Assembly: GCA_002794465.1 (NCBI GenBank) | Contig: MTSL01000041.1 | Span: 157,479 to 173,390, forward strand | Length of the DNA: 15,912 nt | Direction: 5' to 3' | DNA from: Paramicrosporidium saccamoebae KSL3 | Lineage: Eukaryota; Fungi; Cryptomycota | Part shown: positions 144-15,200 of the stretch, piece after piece | Layout of the letters: every line of letters begins with the position of its first letter | How positions within the stretch are numbered: position 1 is the stretch's first letter | Notes under the pieces: generated by a model | The model's database searches: none | Told to the model about the DNA's origin: nothing | The model's input: the letters and a program-made list of their open reading frames with translations, nothing else | Translations under genes and position numbers: made by a program

Positions 144-1466
144 ATGCAGGAGCTTTGTGCAAATAGCACAATGGCGAATGTCGATGAGAATTATTACAAA
201 GTTGAGGAGATTATCGATAGCCGCATTAGTCCCACAAACGGCCACTGTGAATTTCTTGTAAAGTGGAAAGACTACTCTTCCATTTGGAATAGCTGGGAAC
301 CGGCAGTTCATCTACAGCACTGTCATATTGCGCTTGCCAATTTCGAACACGCTCGACGCGCCGCCGAGATTAAGGACGAGGTGACTTTTGCGAAGAAGAT
401 GAAAGAAAATGCAGTGGATAGTCTGCACACGCAACTTGAACAGAAACAAGCAGTACGAATCGAGCGGGAAAAAACAAGGCAACCTGGATCTACACCAACG
501 GATCAATTCGACCATATCTCAAAAAGTCAACCAGGTCCTGCACTGGTAGGCTCTTTGGACTCTGAACGAGCACCCTCCTCCCATTCAGACCACCCTTTTG
601 TCCCTTCGCCTTATGCTCGTCGACGTGGAAGTGTATTTGAGAAATTTGAGAAAATGATGAATTCTTGTGGTGGGGAACTGATCACTGTCGAGAATGAGGT
701 GGACAATGTCTTTCCCCCAGCACATTTTAGGTGTCTTTCTGCACCAATTATCGGGAGTGGCGTTCCCACTTCTGACCCTTCCTTCCTCATTGGATGCACT
801 TGTCACCCAGACCGCCAGTGCCATGACGGCGAGTGTGCCTGTGTTTCCCAGAATCCCGATCCGAGGCGCATCTACTCTTCAGATGGACGGTTGCTCATCA
901 CTTCAGGCCCCATATATGAATGCAACTCCAAGTGCTCCTGTCCATTATCCTGTCCAAATCGTGTTGTTCAGCGAGGACGCACAGTGCCTCTCGTCATAGC
1001 ACGTTATGGCCCCATTAAGGGCTGGGGTGTGAAGGCAGCCGCTGAGATTCCCAAAGGCACTTTTATTGATGTATATCTGGGCGAACTAATCACCACTGCA
1101 GAGGCTACAAGACGAATTGCCTCCGCCAAACATGGCAGGGGAAGTTATCTATTTGACATTGACTTTAATTACGAGGTCGGCACCGAGTCCGCCTACACCA
1201 TTGACGCATATACATTTGGGAACGTCACTCATTTCATTAACCATTCATGCGAGCCCAATTTGAGGGTTCATGCATGTTTTATTGACACGGCAGATCCAAG
1301 TCTGCACATGCTTGCGTTTTTTGCAAAGCGCAATATTGCCAAAGGCGAGGAGCTATGCTTTGACTATCTTGGCAGCCATGGTGCGGCACAGGCTCCTCAA
1401 GGAACACCGGGCCGGAGGCAACCTTGCTCCTGTGGTACATCCAAATGTAGAGGCTTCATTTATTAA
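144..1466 (+). CDS. clr4: Histone H3K9 methyltransferase, Clr4/SUV39H type (chromodomain + pre-SET + SET + post-SET), 440 aa; start could alternatively be ATG 171
   Basis: Chromodomain YKVEEIIDSR...FLVKWKDYSSIWNSWEP; 9-Cys pre-SET (GCTC..C..CAC..IYECNSKCSCPLSCPNR); SET motifs KGWGV, YLGELIT, YLFDID, FINHSCEPN, EELCFDY; post-SET CSCGTSKCRG. Confidence 0.94.
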   Translation: MQELCANSTMANVDENYYKVEEIIDSRISPTNGHCEFLVKWKDYSSIWNSWEPAVHLQHCHIALANFEHARRAAEIKDEVTFAKKMKENAVDSLHTQLEQKQAVRIEREKTRQPGSTPTDQFDHISKSQPGPALVGSLDSERAPSSHSDHPFVPSPYARRRGSVFEKFEKMMNSCGGELITVENEVDNVFPPAHFRCLSAPIIGSGVPTSDPSFLIGCTCHPDRQCHDGECACVSQNPDPRRIYSSDGRLLITSGPIYECNSKCSCPLSCPNRVVQRGRTVPLVIARYGPIKGWGVKAAAEIPKGTFIDVYLGELITTAEATRRIASAKHGRGSYLFDIDFNYEVGTESAYTIDAYTFGNVTHFINHSCEPNLRVHACFIDTADPSLHMLAFFAKRNIAKGEELCFDYLGSHGAAQAPQGTPGRRQPCSCGTSKCRGFIY

Positions 1467-1725
1467 ACTGTAATTTATACTAGCAGTTGGCTCAGCAATG
1501 GACGAGGGGGACACGGGCCGAAGGCAACCTTGCTCCTGCGGCACACCCAAATGTAGAGGCTTCATTTATTAAACTGTAATTTATACTAGCAGCTGGCTTA
1601 GCAATGGACGAGAGGAACACGGACCAAAGGCAACCTTGCTCCCGTGGGTACATCCAAATGTAGAGGCTCCATTAAACTGGGATTTATGACTAGTTGACTT
1701 TGTTATCAATGAACGGGAGGAACAC
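1401..1725. repeat. Three tandem copies of a ~106-nt unit (starts 1401, 1508, 1614; residual GGAACAC at 1719) containing the clr4 post-SET codons, stop, short 3' flank and U1 3' end
   Basis: AGGCAACCTTGCTCC at 1416, 1522 and 1628; CCAAATGTAGAGGCT recurs in each copy. Copies 1 and 2 differ by 8 substitutions and 1 indel; copy 3 is more decayed. Confidence 0.97.
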
Positions 1726-1870
1726 GAGGAACCTCCCACTACCAAAAATTACATGGTTGAGACACCCGGAGGTGTTCACAGCCCATGAGGACGGAACCGG
1801 TTGTGCAATGGACCATCCAGGACCGGAGGCGCTGCCTTCTTGATCACAGCTGCCTCCCCACCAGGTAAGT
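1714..1870 (-). ncRNA. U1: U1 spliceosomal snRNA (~157 nt)
   Basis: The minus strand reads ACUUACCUGG at the 5' end. SL1 is GGAGGC-A-GCUGU/GCAGC-GCCUCC with loop GAUCAAGAAG (U1-70K site). SL2 has GGAUGG/CCGUCC and loop AUUGCAC (U1A site). SL3 is ACACC-UCCG-GGUGU, and helix H is GUGG/CCAU. Sm site AAUUUUUGG is followed by SL4 GGGAGG/CCUCCC. Order and spacing match canonical U1. Confidence 0.96.
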
Positions 1871-1892
1871 GCCGAGCCAGGGTAATTGGCCT

Positions 1893-1900
1893 TATTTATA
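1893..1900 (-). promoter_or_regulatory. TATA box of the U1 gene
   Basis: TATAAATA on the minus strand starts 30 nt upstream of the U1 5' end at 1870; a CCAAT lies at 1960-1956. Confidence 0.75.
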
Positions 1901-4074: not shown

Positions 4075-4162
4075 CAGTAACAATTCACTGCCATAACAGC
4101 AACAATTTACTGCCATACCAGCAACAATTCACTGTCATAACAGCCACAATTCACTGCTATGC
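4075..4162 (+). repeat. 4 x 22-nt minisatellite (CAGCAACAATTCACTGCCATAA) whose fourth unit contains the PNRC-gene start codon
   Basis: Units at 4075, 4097, 4119 and 4141, each 1-3 mismatches from consensus (4 in unit 4). ATA at 4093, 4115 and 4137 aligns with ATG at 4159. Confidence 0.96.
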
Positions 4163-4707
4163 AAGTTTCTACCGAGCAGCCCACCAAGGGCAAGAAGAAG
4201 CAAAAGAAAAAGAGGCAGAATAGGACAGAACAGACGCCTCCCAGGAGCATGTCCGTCCCCACTGGAAAGCAGCCACTTCCACCTCTACAGCCAGCACGGC
4301 CGACAATCATGCAGGCCAAAGAACGTGCCATGGCCGACGCGCTCTTTGCATCGTCTTCGTCCCAATGGTATGCTGGTGCGGCGTTTGACCGGTCGCCTGC
4401 CGCAAATACTCTCCCTCGTCCCACCAGACTGCTGACCAAGTCGCCGACCAAAGAGGAGGGACAGAATGTAATGGCATCATCTTGTCCCGTCAGTTCGATT
4501 TTGGCTGAGCGGACGTCCCTCACCTCTCCAGGGACACGGACAAGAATGCCGACACCGCCGATGGATTCCAATCTGCGACAAAAGTCGCGTGATTTGTTAA
4601 ATTTGCTGCGTTCCGAACCGCAGGCGGTGACTGTTCAGGACAAAAGCAAGAGCGAGGATTTAGAGGAAATGACTCGACAGGTTCGCAAATTGCTGAATAT
4701 ATCCTAG
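4159..4707 (+). CDS. PNRC/Edc1-like proline-rich protein (probable mRNA decapping activator), 182 aa
   Basis: Motif WYAGAAFDRSPAANTLPRP matches the PNRC/Edc1 YAGxxFxxSPxxxxLPxP motif. N-terminal basic patch KGKKKQKKKR; C-terminal helices SRDLLNLLR and TRQVRKLLNI; otherwise disordered. Confidence 0.8.
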   Translation: MQVSTEQPTKGKKKQKKKRQNRTEQTPPRSMSVPTGKQPLPPLQPARPTIMQAKERAMADALFASSSSQWYAGAAFDRSPAANTLPRPTRLLTKSPTKEEGQNVMASSCPVSSILAERTSLTSPGTRTRMPTPPMDSNLRQKSRDLLNLLRSEPQAVTVQDKSKSEDLEEMTRQVRKLLNIS

Positions 4708-4763
4708 TGTGCTTATAAGGAAGTCTTTGCTTCCAGCCTCACATCCCCGTTATGGTGTTGGGA

Positions 4764-5036
4764 GACGATTCAATGGGTTCATCATATTCTAAGAGCTTTT
4801 ATTATTGTCGAGACGATTAAAGCAGTGCTTTTTAGAAGTTTAGTATTGTTTAAGGTGCACATATGATAGATTCAAAGGGCTCCTTGAATCCTAAAGCAGC
4901 GCCTTTTAAAAGTTTAGTATTGTTTAAGATGCACATATGACAGATTCAAAGGGTTCCTCGTATCCTAAGAGCTTTTATTAGTGTCGAGAAGGTTAAAGCA
5001 GCGTTTTTTAGAGGCTTCATATTGTTTAAAACGCAT
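4764..5036 (-). repeat. Tandem triplication (~102-nt unit; middle copy has a 28-nt deletion) of the kinase gene's last ~24 codons, stop and ~30 nt of 3' flank
   Basis: CTAAGAGCTTTTATTA at 4789 and 4965; TAAAGCAG in all three copies; AGTTTAGTATTGTTTAAG twice; GATTCAA(A/T)GGG three times including a partial unit at 4764. Confidence 0.95.
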
Positions 5037-6145: not shown

Positions 6146-6211
6146 TTGGAGTGTTTTTGGAGTATTGGAGCATTGGAGTATTGGGGTGTTGGAGTGTTGG
6201 AGTATTGGATA
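6146..6211. repeat. ~8 copies of an 8-nt unit TTGGAGTR upstream of the kinase gene
   Basis: ttggagtg-ttt-ttggagta-ttggagca-ttggagta-ttggggtg-ttggagtg-ttggagta-ttggata. Confidence 0.92.
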
Positions 6212-6351
6212 TTAGACACTAAACGCTATTCGACAGTTTCGAACACTTTGGAAATTTAAACCTGAACAAGTCGAGTGAACGAATGGTATACAATTGCCTA
6301 TTATACTCGAGACAATCATATGACATGGATGAATATTATACAGATTATGAT

Positions 6352-7365: not shown

Positions 7366-9409
7366 ATGAATCCTCAGGGATATGTCGCAGGGTCGGGCGA
7401 CACTTACACTATGCCACAACCCAGCAAGTCGCGCAGCAAAGTACATTTTGCATGTTGCCTCACACCTTTGTAGTTTGTGGACTTTTTGGCTGGTGATAGA
7501 GATTTAGCGCCGAGTTCGGGTGTCGAGCCAAGCCGGTCTTGTTCAGCACCACCCGCCGAACGGCTATTCATGCCAGCGCCGATGGAATCTTTGCAGGAGG
7601 ATGACCCTCGGCTGGACCCCACGTATCCTGCATTTTTCCATTCCCACAGTCGTCTTGATCCACGTCTCCCGCCTCCATTCTATTCTCCAGGCCAGTCTTG
7701 GCAGCAATTATGGCCACTATCCTCGCTCGGTCCCGCAGGATCGTCGCAGTTGGCAATGCTGGATGGGGTGGGTGGAAATGACGCAGACCTTGACCATGCC
7801 TCAGCGCCAGCGAGACAATCGTTGGTGGACCGAATTCAGGCAGACTTTCCTCGTACTCCATCGCCCGTCTACGCCAACACACTGCGAGCGTTACGGCATT
7901 CAAAGGAAAATTTGAGTTCTCTGCATTCAGCCACTGGTGCGGAGCAGAGCACTGATGATTTCTTGACCTTTTCTATGGACCGGTTAGCGCTTGAGGAGGA
8001 GAGACGGACATTGAAAGCAGTCCAAAGACAAGGAAACCAACCGAGTGCATCTTCCAGCGCCGAGTTTGAATGGAACCGACAGGATGGAACTCTGTTTGGT
8101 GCGCAGAATCCTCGCACCGCCAGTGGCGTTTCAATTTCCCTTGGCGCTCTTGGAAAGGGACGTGGCAGCGAACAGAATGCAGCACGACCACCCATGTTGG
8201 CTGAAGATATCGGCTTTGGAATGATTGCACCCGGAGGTCCTATTCCCCTCAACTCGTCGCCATTCCTCCCCGCTGCTGGCAACCGACAGGCCAGTTTACT
8301 CGAGGAATTTCGTGCCAATAGACTTCGGAAATTAGAGCTGCAAGACATTATTGGGCATGTGGTAGACTTTAGTAGCGACCAGCATGGTTCTCGATTCATC
8401 CAACAGAAACTAGAAACGGCCAACAATGCAGAACGGAATATTGTGTTTGTGGAAATTATGCCGCAGGCCTTACAGCTGATGACTGATGTTTTTGGAAATT
8501 ACGTGATACAAAAGTTTTTCGAATATGGCGCATTGGATCAGAAGATTGGCCTGTCCAAGACGCTTCAGGGACACGTTCTTTCCCTCTCACTGCAAATGTA
8601 TGGCTGTCGTGTCATCCAAAAGGCGCTGGAGCATCTACCAGCCGAATATCAAGGCAAAATTGTTGCTGAACTCGATGGCCATGTTTTACGGTGCGTAAAG
8701 GACCAGAATGGAAATCACGTGATCCAGAAGTGCATTGAATGCGTTCCCTCGGATGTCGCCCCCTTTGTCATACAATCATTCAAAGGACAAATCTTTACAC
8801 TTGCAACGCATCCATATGGCTGTCGTGTGATCCAGCGGATATTTGAACATGGTGCCGAGATGCAGTCCCGACCCTTGATTGACGAGCTACACCGATTTAC
8901 GACAAATCTTGTGCAGGATCAGTATGGAAACTATGTCGTTCAGCACATTTTGGAAAAGGGCCCCCCAGAGGACAAGCACGAAATTATCAGCAAAGTCAAG
9001 GGAAATGTGCTGACCTTTTCCCGACACAAATTTGCAAGCAATGTGGTGGAAAAGTGTGTTGCTAATGGCAGTCGCTCTGATAGACAAGCGCTCATTGAAG
9101 AGGTCCTGGAACTGTTGCCTGATGGGTACTATTAATATTGCTATGGATCTCATTGATAGGACATTTCCTCTTTTGCTAATGATGCGCGATCAATATGCAA
9201 ACTATGTCGTTCAAAAAATGTTGGACATGGTGGATGGAGAACAGCGGGAATTGCTCCTTTCCCGGATGAAGCCGCATCTGTCCTCGCTGCGGAAATTCAC
9301 CTACGGCAAGCATATCTTGAGCAAAGTTGAAAAGTTACTTGGGTACGCAGTGCCTGAGGCCACTGGCGCAAAGAACGATGCACAGCCGGGTATTGCTCGG
9401 TCACGGTAG
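7366..9409 (+). CDS. PUF3: Pumilio/Puf3-type RNA-binding protein, join(7366..7440,7474..9125,9160..9409), ~658 aa
   Basis: Eight PUF repeats with recognition motifs SRFIQ, NYVIQ, CRVIQ, NHVIQ, CRVIQ, NYVVQ, SNVVE, NYVVQ, and C-terminal [15 protein letters not shown]. Repeat 8 is reached through a 34-nt intron. The first exon is inferred from a 33-nt GT-AG intron and is less certain. Confidence 0.93.
7441..7473 (+). other. Spliceosomal intron, 33 nt (Pumilio intron 1)
   Basis: GTACATTTTGCATGTTGCCTCACACCTTTGTAG; joins an ATG-initiated exon to an ORF lacking a nearby ATG; retention ends in an in-frame TAG. Confidence 0.72.
9126..9159 (+). other. Spliceosomal intron, 34 nt (Pumilio intron 2)
   Basis: GTACTATTAATATTGCTATGGATCTCATTGATAG; phase 2, removal restores DG|[18 protein letters not shown]. 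Confidence 0.9.
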
Positions 9410-10819: not shown

Positions 10820-11182
10820 TTAATAAGCTCCGGGACCCCAGGAGTTGGAGGAGTTGGGACTTTGCGGACTGTTATAGCTTGGCCGCTGGGGCTGACTAGT
10901 GCATGAACAGTGAAGCTTCATCTTTCGGCGCTGCTGCTGTCCGAAACGCGATCCCTGACCATATTGCGGGGGTGGCGACTGTCCATATGAAGGGTTTTGT
11001 TGTCCGTACTGTGACGGAGGTTGCTGTCCGTACTGGTAGGAGGGTGGCTGTCCATACTGCGATGATGGCTGTCCGTATGAAGAGCTTGGTGGTTGCCCAT
11101 ATGCAGAATTGGGCGAATATCCCCAGTCGCCAGAAGCATTGGCAAGGGCAAGGGTGCTGATCGCTATAACAAGAAGTTTCAT
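10820..11182 (-). CDS. Secreted low-complexity protein with (S/Q)YGQ(Q)PP repeats, 120 aa
   Basis: ATG at 11182 with signal peptide MKLLVIAISTLALANA; seven YGQ units plus FGQ; C-terminal HCSC. The ORF track's longer start is a non-ATG codon. Confidence 0.8.
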   Translation of the reverse strand: MKLLVIAISTLALANASGDWGYSPNSAYGQPPSSSYGQPSSQYGQPPSYQYGQQPPSQYGQQNPSYGQSPPPQYGQGSRFGQQQRRKMKLHCSCTSQPQRPSYNSPQSPNSSNSWGPGAY

Positions 11183-11388: not shown

Positions 11389-11898
11389 CTAGAGGATCGG
11401 TGCAGGATGGCATTTAATTGTTTGCTGTTGTTTTAGCTCAAACTGCCCGGGAGAGATTTCCTTCATGTTGATTGTATGAGTGGTGACCTGACAGTTCATT
11501 GTCCCACCCGTCTGTTGATGCATCTTGGTGGGAGGGCTGGCAAAGACGATTTTTTGTTCACTGGGCACCACCAGATACTGGATATGGTCCGTGTGTTGTG
11601 TGGGTTGAGTCTGAACCAACTGTGGATGTTGAACCTGGACTGACTGTGGGGGTTGAATCTGGACTAACTGTGGGGGTTGAATCTGGACTGACTGCGGGGG
11701 TTGAATCTGGACTAGTTGTGGAGGCTGAATCTGGACTAATTGTGGGGGTTGAGTCTGGACCGGTTGTGAATGCTGGGTTTGGACCAACTGCACGGGTGCA
11801 TCATGATGCATTGATGTTGATGCGACGCCAAAGAGGAAAACTATCGCAAATTCTGCGCTGAGCGCAAGCTGCATCCCAAGTTTGAGATCGAGAATCAT
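11389..11898 (-). CDS. Probable secreted Gln/Pro/Val-rich repeat protein, 169 aa (161 aa if started at the second Met)
   Basis: Hydrophobic segment FAIVFLFGVAS near the N-terminus; 8 x PQLVQIQP-type repeats; C-terminal domain with two Cys (MNCQV...IKCHP). Confidence 0.75.
   Translation of the reverse strand: MILDLKLGMQLALSAEFAIVFLFGVASTSMHHDAPVQLVQTQHSQPVQTQPPQLVQIQPPQLVQIQPPQSVQIQPPQLVQIQPPQSVQVQHPQLVQTQPTQHTDHIQYLVVPSEQKIVFASPPTKMHQQTGGTMNCQVTTHTINMKEISPGQFELKQQQTIKCHPAPIL
11602..11793 (-). repeat. Coding minisatellite, 8 x 24 nt (PQ[L/S]VQIQP)
   Basis: GGTTGAATCTGGACT(A/G)ACTG(T/C)GGG-type units on the + strand. Confidence 0.95.
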
Positions 11899-12200: not shown

Positions 12201-15200
12201 ATGGAGGACAAAACACGTCGGCTTCCTTTGGAGTATGCAAACGTGCTGTCCCAGTGGACGTATCACTGGGTGGGCGCGGTCATGCATGCGGGCGTAAAGT
12301 TGGGAATGTACACTGTCCCCACCAGTCTCACCACATACACCAACACTCGACGGTTCCAAGAGGTGTGGAAGAAGGAGATATGTTGGACGCGTCTGGCCAT
12401 TATGTTTGGGGGAGGGCTCTTTTGGTGGAGCGGCGTACTGGCGTTGGCAGTGGAGATATTGAGCAACAGCAGTACACGGTGCATGCGCAACTTTATTGAC
12501 ACACTAAAGGGGACTGACGAGAGTCAGCGTTATTTCTGGGCAGAGCTGTTGCTTGTAGTATCGCTGGGCCGACGGGTTGCACTGAACCGTTCAATGGAGG
12601 TCATCTCGACGATTGCGTATATGCTACGGGCGGGAGTAATGGGGACAATGTATGAACGTCTGTTGGTAGCACGACGGATGTGGGCAGTAGGAAGCGGCTT
12701 TAACCGTCTGACCGTGGACAGCACCCGCCTGTCAGCACTGTTTCTGTATGTGCATCTGTTCTGGTCGCATCCACTGCGGATTCTGTTGGCCTTTCATACG
12801 GCGTGGGTGATGCAGGGTGTTCCAGCGTTGGCAGGGATAGCCTTTGTCAGTGGTATCATCTGCACATTGTTTTGGATTGCACGTCAAATGCGAATTGTAC
12901 GCCAACAGTTGGCACTTTTAGCCGATCAGCGACTTCAGTTGACCAGTGAAGCACTAACGACGCTTCGGATGGTCAAGACATTATCACTTGAAGAGGTTTT
13001 TGCTCAACGTATCGACTCGATCCGTCGTGTGGAGCTGCGTGGAATTCGTTGGTTAAACACGCTGTTTGCGCTGTCGGCGTCATTGAACTTTTGGTCGCCA
13101 GTCTTTGCCACAACGATTGTGGTGGTGGTGGCGACGCTGCAAGGAGAGATATTGCAGCCGGGAAAGGTATGTGCAGTAGCACGGACATTCCAAGCACTAA
13201 TGGTTCCGTTGTGGATGTTACCAATGATGGTTAATCGACTCATTGCGACGGCCGTCTCAGTGGAACGTATTGATGAATATCTCTCTGTCGATACTGTGGA
13301 GGAGGCTGAAACGACACCAAATCTGATCTTGGATCACGTAGACTTTTCCGACTCGGGTCAGGTGCTGCTCCGCGATATAAAGCTTGATTTGCGTTCCCCG
13401 GGACTGATTGGGGTGACAGGTGGCACAGGGAGTGGAAAGAGTGCATTTCTAACGGGACTGGCAGGATTGTTGGATGACACGGGTCCATATCGTCCTCCAA
13501 TAGAGTTGGGATACTGTCCAATGCCTGCTTGGCTGAAGAGGGACACTGTACAAGAAAATATTCTTTTTGGTCGACCACTTGAGCTGGAATGGTACCAAGT
13601 CGTCCTGTCAGCCTGCGCCCTGACGGAGGAATTGCGTGATGATCAATTAGTTGGCGAGAATGGCGTATTGTTGAGTGGGGGGCAACGTCAGCGAGTGGCT
13701 CTTGCCCGTGCCCTATACGGTCGTCCGCATCTCCTACTGATGGATGATATTCTGTCATCATTGGATCCCCGTATTTCCCGACACGTCTTTGACGCGTGTT
13801 TTTCTGAAAAAGGCATTCTTCCCAATTGTGTTCGACTAATTGTCACCAATGAACAAGAATATCTCTGTCGATGTGACAAGGTGCTATTAGTGTCTGATGG
13901 ACAAATTTCCGAGTTGGTTAAATCTACCGGATCTACTGAACCTACTGAATCTACCGAATCTACCGAATCTACCGCACCTACTAAATCTACTGAATCTACC
14001 GAGTCTACCGAACCTACTGTATCTACCGAATCTACTGAACCTACTGAACCCAACCAGTCCATCGAATTAGCTGAACCGATCGAGTTGATGGAACCCGCTA
14101 CAATCAAGGATCAGAACGAAGTCATTTTGAAGAGCACTCTTAGAGAATTGACTAGCACATTGGTAAGGGCAGTGGGAGGGATAGTGCCCATGGGACTTTT
14201 ATTTTTGGTGGTACTGTGCACTGATTTGAGCAGTTTGGGACGTGACATTATCCTACACAATCGACTGCAATCGGCCGATTCATCGACGCTGAATTTCCTC
14301 CTTACCGTTACGATAATGGGAACTCTTCAAGGGGCACTGACGGCATTCGCTAATCTAACGGCCGTGTTCCTGTGCCATCGCTCGTCCACGCGCATCCATC
14401 AAGAAGCCCTGCAACGCATATTGAGGGCGCGGATGGAGGCGGTGGATGGGGTGCCCACTGGTCGTCTGCTGAACCGTCTGGGTCCCGATTTGGAGACGCT
14501 CGATTATACATTTCCTGAGAAACTGATTGCCTGTATGGGCACCCTCAGCTCCTTCCTCTGCACCATATTGGCCTTTTGGTATTTTGTGCCCCTTTTGTTA
14601 CTCACTTTGCCCATCACTCTGTTAGTAGCAGTGCTGCTGCAACGACGTTTTGCGCGGGTATGGACAGAGTTATTGCGTCTGTCAGGAGCCGCATTGGCGC
14701 CCCTCTCCGCTCTGCTTGCTGAAACGGCAGTTGGTCTCCCCACCCTGCGCATCTTTAATCACACTCCGCATTATCTCCAGCGCTTTATGCGTTTCTGCGA
14801 CCAATACACGTTAATGGCGTATTTAGGCATTGGGGTGCGTCGTTGGATAGCCTTCCGTTGTCATTTAATAGCCATATTGTATTTGGCTGCAATTGTTGTC
14901 TATTGCATTGTGGCCAAGGTCGATGCCAGTACTGCCGGAATGCTGTTAATGTATGCTATGCGCACTGGCGAGTCTATCGAATGGATTGTGAAACAAATTG
15001 CCGAAATGGAACATTGTCTTGTTGCTGTAGAGCGTGTCTCTCTCTATACACGCACCCTCCCTTGCGAGGAATTTGGGGCGGAGGTGGTGGATGGTGGCGA
15101 TATTGTCATTGACAATCTGTCCGTGTCGTATGAAAATGTTCCTGTGCTCCGTCAGATTTCCGTAACCATTAATAACGGATGCAAAATGCTTGTTGTTGGC

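Follow-up and report, generated by a model that had tools for sequence, protein, structure and literature searches.

We describe a three-copy tandem array that lies across the facing ends of two genes in a 15,912-nt stretch of contig MTSL01000041.1 from the early-diverging fungus Paramicrosporidium saccamoebae KSL3; this whole stretch is hereafter called the window. One of the two genes, here named clr4, encodes a protein of the SUV39/Clr4 family of histone H3 lysine 9 (H3K9) methyltransferases and the other is the gene for the U1 spliceosomal small nuclear RNA (snRNA). The genes are convergent, 3' end to 3' end, clr4 being on the plus strand and U1 on the minus strand. We consider it likely that the array is a microhomology-mediated tandem duplication that became fixed and later gained a third copy; as such it is an ordinary tandem triplication, probably neutral, of a type whose mechanism is familiar. 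It would then be a clean natural example of a tandem repeat born from a short direct repeat and subsequently expanded, and its history is unusually legible because the two ends of the unit belong to different genes and relatives show which copy is ancestral for which part. These results leave current understanding unchanged. Side results of the analysis are a conserved tail-to-tail order of clr4 and U1 in poorly sampled early-diverging fungi, a candidate U1 motif and signs of a duplication-prone lineage.

A three-copy array across two gene ends

The three units follow one another head to tail with no intervening sequence and are closed by one further GGAACAC (Table 1). The same heptamer opens the units, as GGAACAC at 1401, GGGACAC at 1508 and GGAACAC at 1614, so that with the extra arm at 1719 it marks every unit boundary, the first occurrence lying inside the clr4 coding sequence (CDS) and the last inside stem-loop 4 of U1. 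An earlier note on this DNA, made from the letters alone, had described this arrangement, and both the motif positions and the alignment bear it out. Tandem Repeats Finder (TRF) reported the array at 1400-1673 with a period of 106, 2.6 copies, 88% matches and a score of 439, an independent repeat search recovered four collinear three-copy blocks with spacings of 103-107 nt, and a MAFFT alignment extended the third unit to 1718. Counting the preceding A, the outer arms are identical over 8 nt (AGGAACAC at 1400-1407 and 1718-1725). Elsewhere in the window GGAACAC is found at two further sites only, against a chance expectation of about 2.2. With unrelated breakpoints, the chance that the bases after the last unit repeat its first 7-8 bases would be about 1e-5 to 6e-5. 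A run of n units followed by one extra short arm is the textbook footprint of microhomology-mediated tandem duplication, and with arms of 7-8 nt and so low a chance expectation the earlier note's proposal that an ancestral junction was duplicated in this way is very probably right. An assembly artefact or a chance similarity is extremely improbable, given the TRF score, the collinear blocks from two independent tools and the differences of 7.5-18%, with indels (insertions or deletions), between the copies, which are not what collapsed or duplicated reads would produce.

As the same note had held, the unit spans the ends of both genes. In copy 1 it consists of the last 21 codons and the stop of clr4 (1401-1466), a 36-nt spacer and the remnant of the final 5 nt of U1 (1503-1507). 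The ancestral gap between the clr4 stop and U1, which had been put at about 36 nt, corresponds exactly to 1467-1502; the spacer has thus grown from an implied 36 nt before the duplication to 247 nt at present.

The identity of both genes is well supported. The clr4 open reading frame (ORF) begins with an ATG at 144, with a second ATG at 171, and ends with a stop codon at 1464-1466; it contains Chromo (PF00385), Pre-SET (PF05033) and SET (PF00856) domains, all above the Pfam cut-offs. The C-terminus of the translated protein, CSCGTSKCRGFIY, includes CSCGTSKC, which is the CxCx4C post-SET motif. A protein search found SUV39/Clr4 proteins as its homologues, environmental relatives reaching 64% identity. 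Domains and post-SET motif together place the protein in the SUV39/Clr4 family, so that 'clr4' is acceptable as a family name, and H3K9 methylation is its predicted activity. U1 is the sole Rfam match in the window; it scores 95.8 bits against RF00003 (gathering score 69.5), covers model positions 1-166, and carries the 5' sequence ACUUACCUG and the Sm site AAUUUUUGG. Its stem-loop 4, at 1737-1714 on the minus strand, folds as GGGAGG-UUCCUCGUGUU-CCUCCC.

The loop of this stem-loop is enlarged to 11 nt and contains an internal direct repeat, GUUCCUC..GUUCCUC, with a 9-nt offset. Relatives have UUCG, CUCG or other short loops at this place. The U1-side microhomology arm therefore sits within a lineage-specific enlargement, and this enlargement may be the reason why this lineage alone has the pair of arms.

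The relatives used throughout are seven distinct loci from Logan/ENA assemblies (L001, L002, L003, L005/L006, L007, L008 and L009). Their Clr4 proteins are 46-64% identical to that of the window, which was itself absent from the protein collection searched, and end in CxCGxxxCRG[FY][IV]Y. The earlier note had suggested comparing copy number among relatives. In 7/7, U1 directly follows the clr4 homologue tail to tail and in single copy, and there is no tandem repeat at the junction. The spacers from the stop to U1 measure 151 nt in L001, 113 in L002, 47 in L003, 137 in L005/L006, 117 in L007, 44 in L008 and 93 in L009. The shortest belong to the two nearest relatives, L003 (the closest) and L008, which makes an ancestral spacer of 36 nt plausible. 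L001 and L002 also share the downstream genes for a coiled-coil protein, choline kinase and Rpb7; since the whole block is syntenic, the linkage of clr4 and U1 is not special on its own.

Table 1. Features of the clr4/U1 junction, followed by the second array of the window
Feature	Position	Strand	Basis or remark
Clr4/SUV39-type H3K9 methyltransferase CDS	144..1466	+	uninterrupted ORF, 440 aa; Pfam domains; homologues
Left microhomology arm AGGAACAC	1400..1407		inside clr4 CDS, codons Q-G-T
Repeat copy 1, 107 nt	1401..1507		functional last 21 codons and stop of clr4, spacer, U1 3'-end relic
ATTAAA hexamer, candidate polyadenylation signal	1462..1467	+	overlaps clr4 stop; recurs in copies 2 and 3
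Repeat copy 2, 106 nt	1508..1613		fully redundant; 92.5% identical to copy 1
Repeat copy 3, 105 nt	1614..1718		decayed post-SET relic, intact U1 3' flank, real last 5 nt of U1
Candidate U1 3'-end processing element AACAAAGTCAA	1694..1704	-	given in U1 sense; starts 10 nt past predicted U1 3' end
U1 spliceosomal snRNA, complete, four stem-loops	1714..1872	-	Rfam RF00003
Right microhomology arm GGAACAC	1719..1725		3' part of loop and first two bases of 3' arm of U1 stem-loop 4; minus-strand GUGUUCC
TATAAAT box	1894..1900	-	22-28 nt upstream of U1 5' end; kept in relatives
Second three-unit array, ~102-nt units	~4752-5031		units ~4752-4855, 4856-4929 (28-nt deletion), 4930-5031

Divergence of the copies and the features each retains

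Copies 1 and 2 share 98 matching positions and differ by eight transitions, no transversions and one 1-nt indel. Copy 1 differs from copy 3 by 13 transitions, 3 transversions and 12 gap columns (84% identity), and copy 3 compared with copies 1 and 2 shows 13-15 transitions, 3 transversions and four indel events. The alignment thus agrees with the earlier note that all eight substitutions between copies 1 and 2 are transitions, an outcome that is marginally unusual at a 2:1 transition bias (P ~0.04).

On the clr4 side, the reading frame is intact in copy 1 only, which ends in F-I-Y-stop as in relatives. The sequence encoding this ending, TTCATTTATTAA, is retained by copies 1 and 2, whereas copy 3 is without 4 nt there and has one additional nucleotide upstream. 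Copies 2 and 3 have both lost one C at the junction that the clr4 frame of copy 1 needs. Alternative splicing into copy 2 or 3, which would give clr4 another C-terminus, was considered and rejected, because the sequence before the stop offers no plausible splice sites and copy 3 is not in frame.

On the U1 side, the feature that separates the copies is a short motif in the flank. AAYAAAATCAA, with the variants AAGAAAATCAA and AATAAAATCAA, is present in 7/7 relatives, 9-15 nt beyond the predicted 3' end of U1. The window has a motif of this type in copy 3 only; in copies 1 and 2 it has been destroyed by a common 4-nt deletion together with substitutions. This deletion is shared and derived, so the copies root as ((1,2),3). 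From its conservation and position we regard AAYAAAATCAA as a candidate U1 3'-end processing signal in this early-diverging fungal group, placed like the snRNA 3' box. The metazoan 3' box, GTTTN0-3AAARNNAGA, is recognised by Integrator and lies 9-19 nt past the mature end. The two are alike in being short conserved elements a little downstream of U1, and here only the U1-proximal copy keeps the element; the sequence is a different one, however, and the processing role in this group is putative. We found nothing specific in the literature on a fungal snRNA 3' box or Integrator.

The tail-to-tail order of clr4 and U1 is kept across relatives, and where the spacer is as short as 44-47 nt the U1 flank motif must fall in the clr4 3' untranslated region (UTR). 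Positions 1636-1645 are complementary to the U1 3' arm over 10 nt; a processing stem was considered here and set aside, since a match of that length does not exceed what chance would give in 600 nt.

The earlier note had also contrasted the copies at the position of the U1 3' arm, and the sequences are as it gave them: GAGGGG at 1504-1509, GAGAGG at 1610-1615 and GGGAGG at 1715-1720. These differences are weak evidence, however, because the real U1 of L003 and L008 uses GAGAGG, which in L003 pairs with GGGAGG through a G-U wobble. Its broader claim, that the outer copies have been conserved in opposite directions, holds as a description: judged by the relatives, copy 1 keeps the clr4 frame and copy 3 keeps the U1 motif. 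We found no evidence of selection in this pattern, which is an automatic outcome. A tandem duplication joins each flanking gene to one complete copy, so neither gene would have been damaged, and with both genes intact from the start complementary decay follows of itself and is not a sign of selection.

The arrangement of 3'-end signals also bears on a further idea of the earlier note, namely that read-through of clr4 and U1 over the array could be a source of double-stranded RNA (dsRNA) next to a heterochromatin gene; on this reading the dsRNA would feed small-RNA or heterochromatin pathways beside that gene or directed at it. In Schizosaccharomyces pombe, transient dsRNA and heterochromatin do arise at convergent genes. 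The clr4/U1 pair resembles that system in its close 3' ends and in that one of the genes encodes an H3K9 methyltransferase; it differs in that the organism is not fission yeast and the pair is known from sequence alone. What speaks for the idea is the geometry, two convergent genes that share a 247-nt interval. Complementarity is, however, a property of any overlapping convergent transcripts and nothing specific to the array, and the array moves the two genes further apart, from 36 to 247 nt. Moreover, the ATTAAA at the clr4 stop is a candidate polyadenylation signal, and AATAAA lies at or just past the clr4 stop in several relatives (L001, L002, L003 and L009). Together with the motif 10 nt past U1, it suggests early 3'-end formation on both sides, so both genes probably form their 3' ends close by. 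Neither strand of the array forms notable structure alone. We therefore consider a dsRNA role of the array very unlikely. A structured RNA within the array was likewise sought and rejected, since the array folds no better than shuffled sequence (z = +1.6 for the minus and +2.6 for the plus strand).

Origin of the array

We propose the following history. In an ancestor, a clr4-type gene and U1 would already have been convergent, with only about 36 nt from the stop to the end of U1, and (A)GGAACAC, 7-8 nt long, would by chance have been present twice, 106 nt apart, once 21 codons before the clr4 stop and once within U1 stem-loop 4, where it took in bases of the loop and of the 3' arm. The intervening segment may then have been duplicated as replication slipped, or switched template, from one of these arms to the other, after which the two copies would have diverged. 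Subsequently, the homology of the two 106-nt copies would have permitted unequal exchange or slippage, by which the first junction was copied and copy 2, mostly like copy 1, was added; the 1-nt junction deletion common to copies 2 and 3 is expected if the second step copied the first junction. From then on clr4 would take its true end from copy 1, and U1 its true 3' arm and downstream motif from copy 3, leaving the U1 relics of copies 1 and 2, the whole of copy 2 and the post-SET relic of copy 3 redundant and decaying. We also considered whether copy 2 might have arisen by recombination, the left part deriving from the lineage of copy 3 and the right part from that of copy 1. This would fit the shared 1-nt deletion, but among three sequences all variable sites are singletons and no crossover point is demonstrable, and it was not retained.

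The dimensions of the array agree with what is known of the process. Arms of 7-8 nt at a distance of 106 nt are within the range known to yield duplications, which runs from a few to about 25 nt in arm length and up to a few hundred nt in spacing (PMC8639346). In fission yeast, arm length, GC content and arm spacing predict microhomology-mediated tandem duplications (PMC8639346), with a preference for longer, GC-richer arms about a hundred nt apart (PMC8639346; 10.64898/2026.02.28.708716), and such a process has since been reported to be, across life, the chief route by which tandem duplications arise and grow to at least three copies (Wei et al. 2026, bioRxiv 10.64898/2026.02.28.708716). Like the duplications described in these two studies (PMC8639346; 10.64898/2026.02.28.708716), the clr4/U1 array is fungal, has head-to-tail units with one extra arm, probably went from two to three copies, and has a 7-8-nt arm of mixed GC content with a spacing of ~100 nt in the productive range. 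Unlike them, it is old, fixed and diverged, where they are subclonal or polymorphic, and its single-copy ancestor has not been observed. Its unit also straddles the 3' ends of a protein-coding and an snRNA gene, hence the complementary decay.

This decay recalls two models of wider scope, duplication-degeneration-complementation for genes and tandem duplication and random loss for mitochondrial gene order. As in both, a segment with two functions has been duplicated, each function is kept in a different copy and the relics decay. In contrast to both, the segment here is only ~100 nt and comprises gene ends only, position fixes which copy is retained, and no new function or expression pattern has arisen.

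Several observations weigh against a history of microhomology-mediated duplication followed by neutral decay. GGRACAC is present at neither site in any of the seven relatives. The earlier note had named the lack of GGAACAC at both positions in relatives as evidence against its account, and none indeed has it; at 46-64% protein identity, however, these relatives are too distant to refute or to confirm the account. They are likewise too distant to supply a single-copy allele with both arms, and none was found. Two metagenome DNA scans with U1-derived patterns found no closer relative, the one match, on bacterial contig L010, being due to chance. Next, once copy 3 and the relatives are used as the root, each of the eight substitutions that distinguish copy 1 from copy 2 reads as an AT-to-GC transition; five of them fall to copy 2 and three to copy 1. 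This direction is opposite to the usual GC-to-AT bias and unusual for spontaneous mutation, and from eight sites we offer no explanation; biased gene conversion, or a transcription-associated asymmetry downstream of the heavily transcribed U1, are possibilities. Furthermore, between copy 3 and copy 1 the formerly coding left half has 5/56 substitutions and the right half 11/44 (Fisher P = 0.05). This is not what pure neutral decay would lead one to expect, and the lower divergence of the left half of copy 3 could hint at gene conversion or constraint. Finally, arrays of this type occupy two of the window's three convergent junctions, so that selection for wider spacers may have played a part, a point taken up below.

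The excess of transitions could also be attributed to a repeat-targeted mutator of the type of repeat-induced point mutation (RIP), since copies 1 and 2 differ by eight transitions and no transversions and 18 of the 21 substitutions overall are transitions. The rooted changes run from AT to GC, however, opposite to the C-to-T changes of RIP, only a single site lies in a fitting CpA context, and at a 2:1 transition bias the probability of the pattern is no lower than ~0.04. The 106-nt units also fall short of the repeats that RIP is known to detect. As for the lineage, the best named matches of the PUF domain encoded in the window are from Mortierellomycota, Zoopagomycota, Kickxellomycotina and chytrids (64-69%), and Mortierellomycota, Zoopagomycota and chytrids are outside the groups with known RIP; the source is thus an early-diverging fungus that falls outside the Dikarya. 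A RIP-type origin of the divergence is therefore highly improbable.

Tandem repeats elsewhere and a second convergent junction

The clr4/U1 array is one of many tandem repeats in the window. TRF gave 16 rows over the 15.9 kb of the window, compared with one small repeat in L001 and two in L002 over the syntenic 13-kb loci, a density that points to a repeat-prone lineage and not to a special device. Further arrays are found in frame within coding sequence (10997-11059, 11596-11790 and 13921-14050) and in non-coding sequence (4075-4157 and 6157-6213).

The second three-unit array (Table 1) fills the convergent spacer between ORF 4159-4707 and the minus-strand choline kinase gene, and its units take in the last ~22 codons of the latter (stop at 4965-4967). 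The orthologous spacer, between orthologous flanking genes, is 55 nt in L001 and 43 nt in L002, without a repeat. The presence of two three-unit arrays with ~100-nt units fits a general mutational tendency.

The same pair of arrays is also the main argument for another account of why the clr4/U1 array persists: that it arose as proposed above, but that its expansion was retained by selection for separating two crowded 3' ends, from 36 to 247 nt. A wider spacer would give clr4 a 3' UTR without the U1 motif and the polymerase II that transcribes U1 room to terminate before the clr4 CDS, and would lessen interference between the two genes. Two of the three convergent junctions (clr4/U1, and ORF 4159-4707/choline kinase) carry an array of three ~100-nt units that includes a coding 3' end, and relatives have very short spacers at the orthologous junctions (44-47 nt and 43-55 nt, respectively). 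More distant relatives have clr4/U1 spacers of 93-151 nt without repeats, so spacer length is evolutionarily labile. However, relatives evidently function with 44-47 nt, the sample consists of three junctions, and many other tandem repeats lie in coding and 5' regions of the window, so that a mutational tendency explains both arrays without selection. We therefore regard retention by selection as unlikely, and prefer duplication between the microhomology arms, later expansion and neutral decay.

A related and more general conjecture, which we make only tentatively and think doubtful, is that this lineage preferentially widens 3'-3' junctions that measure only ~40 nt in relatives, through the triplication of ~100-nt units with a gene 3' end in them, the window offering two independent cases. 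The cause could be mutational, if convergent termination zones are hot spots of replication slippage, or it could be selection relieving interference between 3'-end signals, here a U1 3'-box-like motif inside the clr4 3' UTR. We found nothing specific in the literature on tandem duplications at convergent gene ends. Should the enrichment at convergent junctions prove true of the whole genome, this would be relevant to the way in which compact genomes deal with closely packed 3' ends.

Two further features of the window were noted. A 75-codon ORF running from ATG to stop (MASPLVKLLLFAIGKK...) lies at 1975-2202 on the plus strand, between U1 and the coiled-coil gene. The PUF (Pumilio) gene, at 7477-9409, appears to be divided over two overlapping ORFs in different frames (7477-9135 and 9032-9409), a pattern that a short intron or a frameshift around 9030-9135 would explain; in the relative L011, too, PUF is called as two neighbouring genes.

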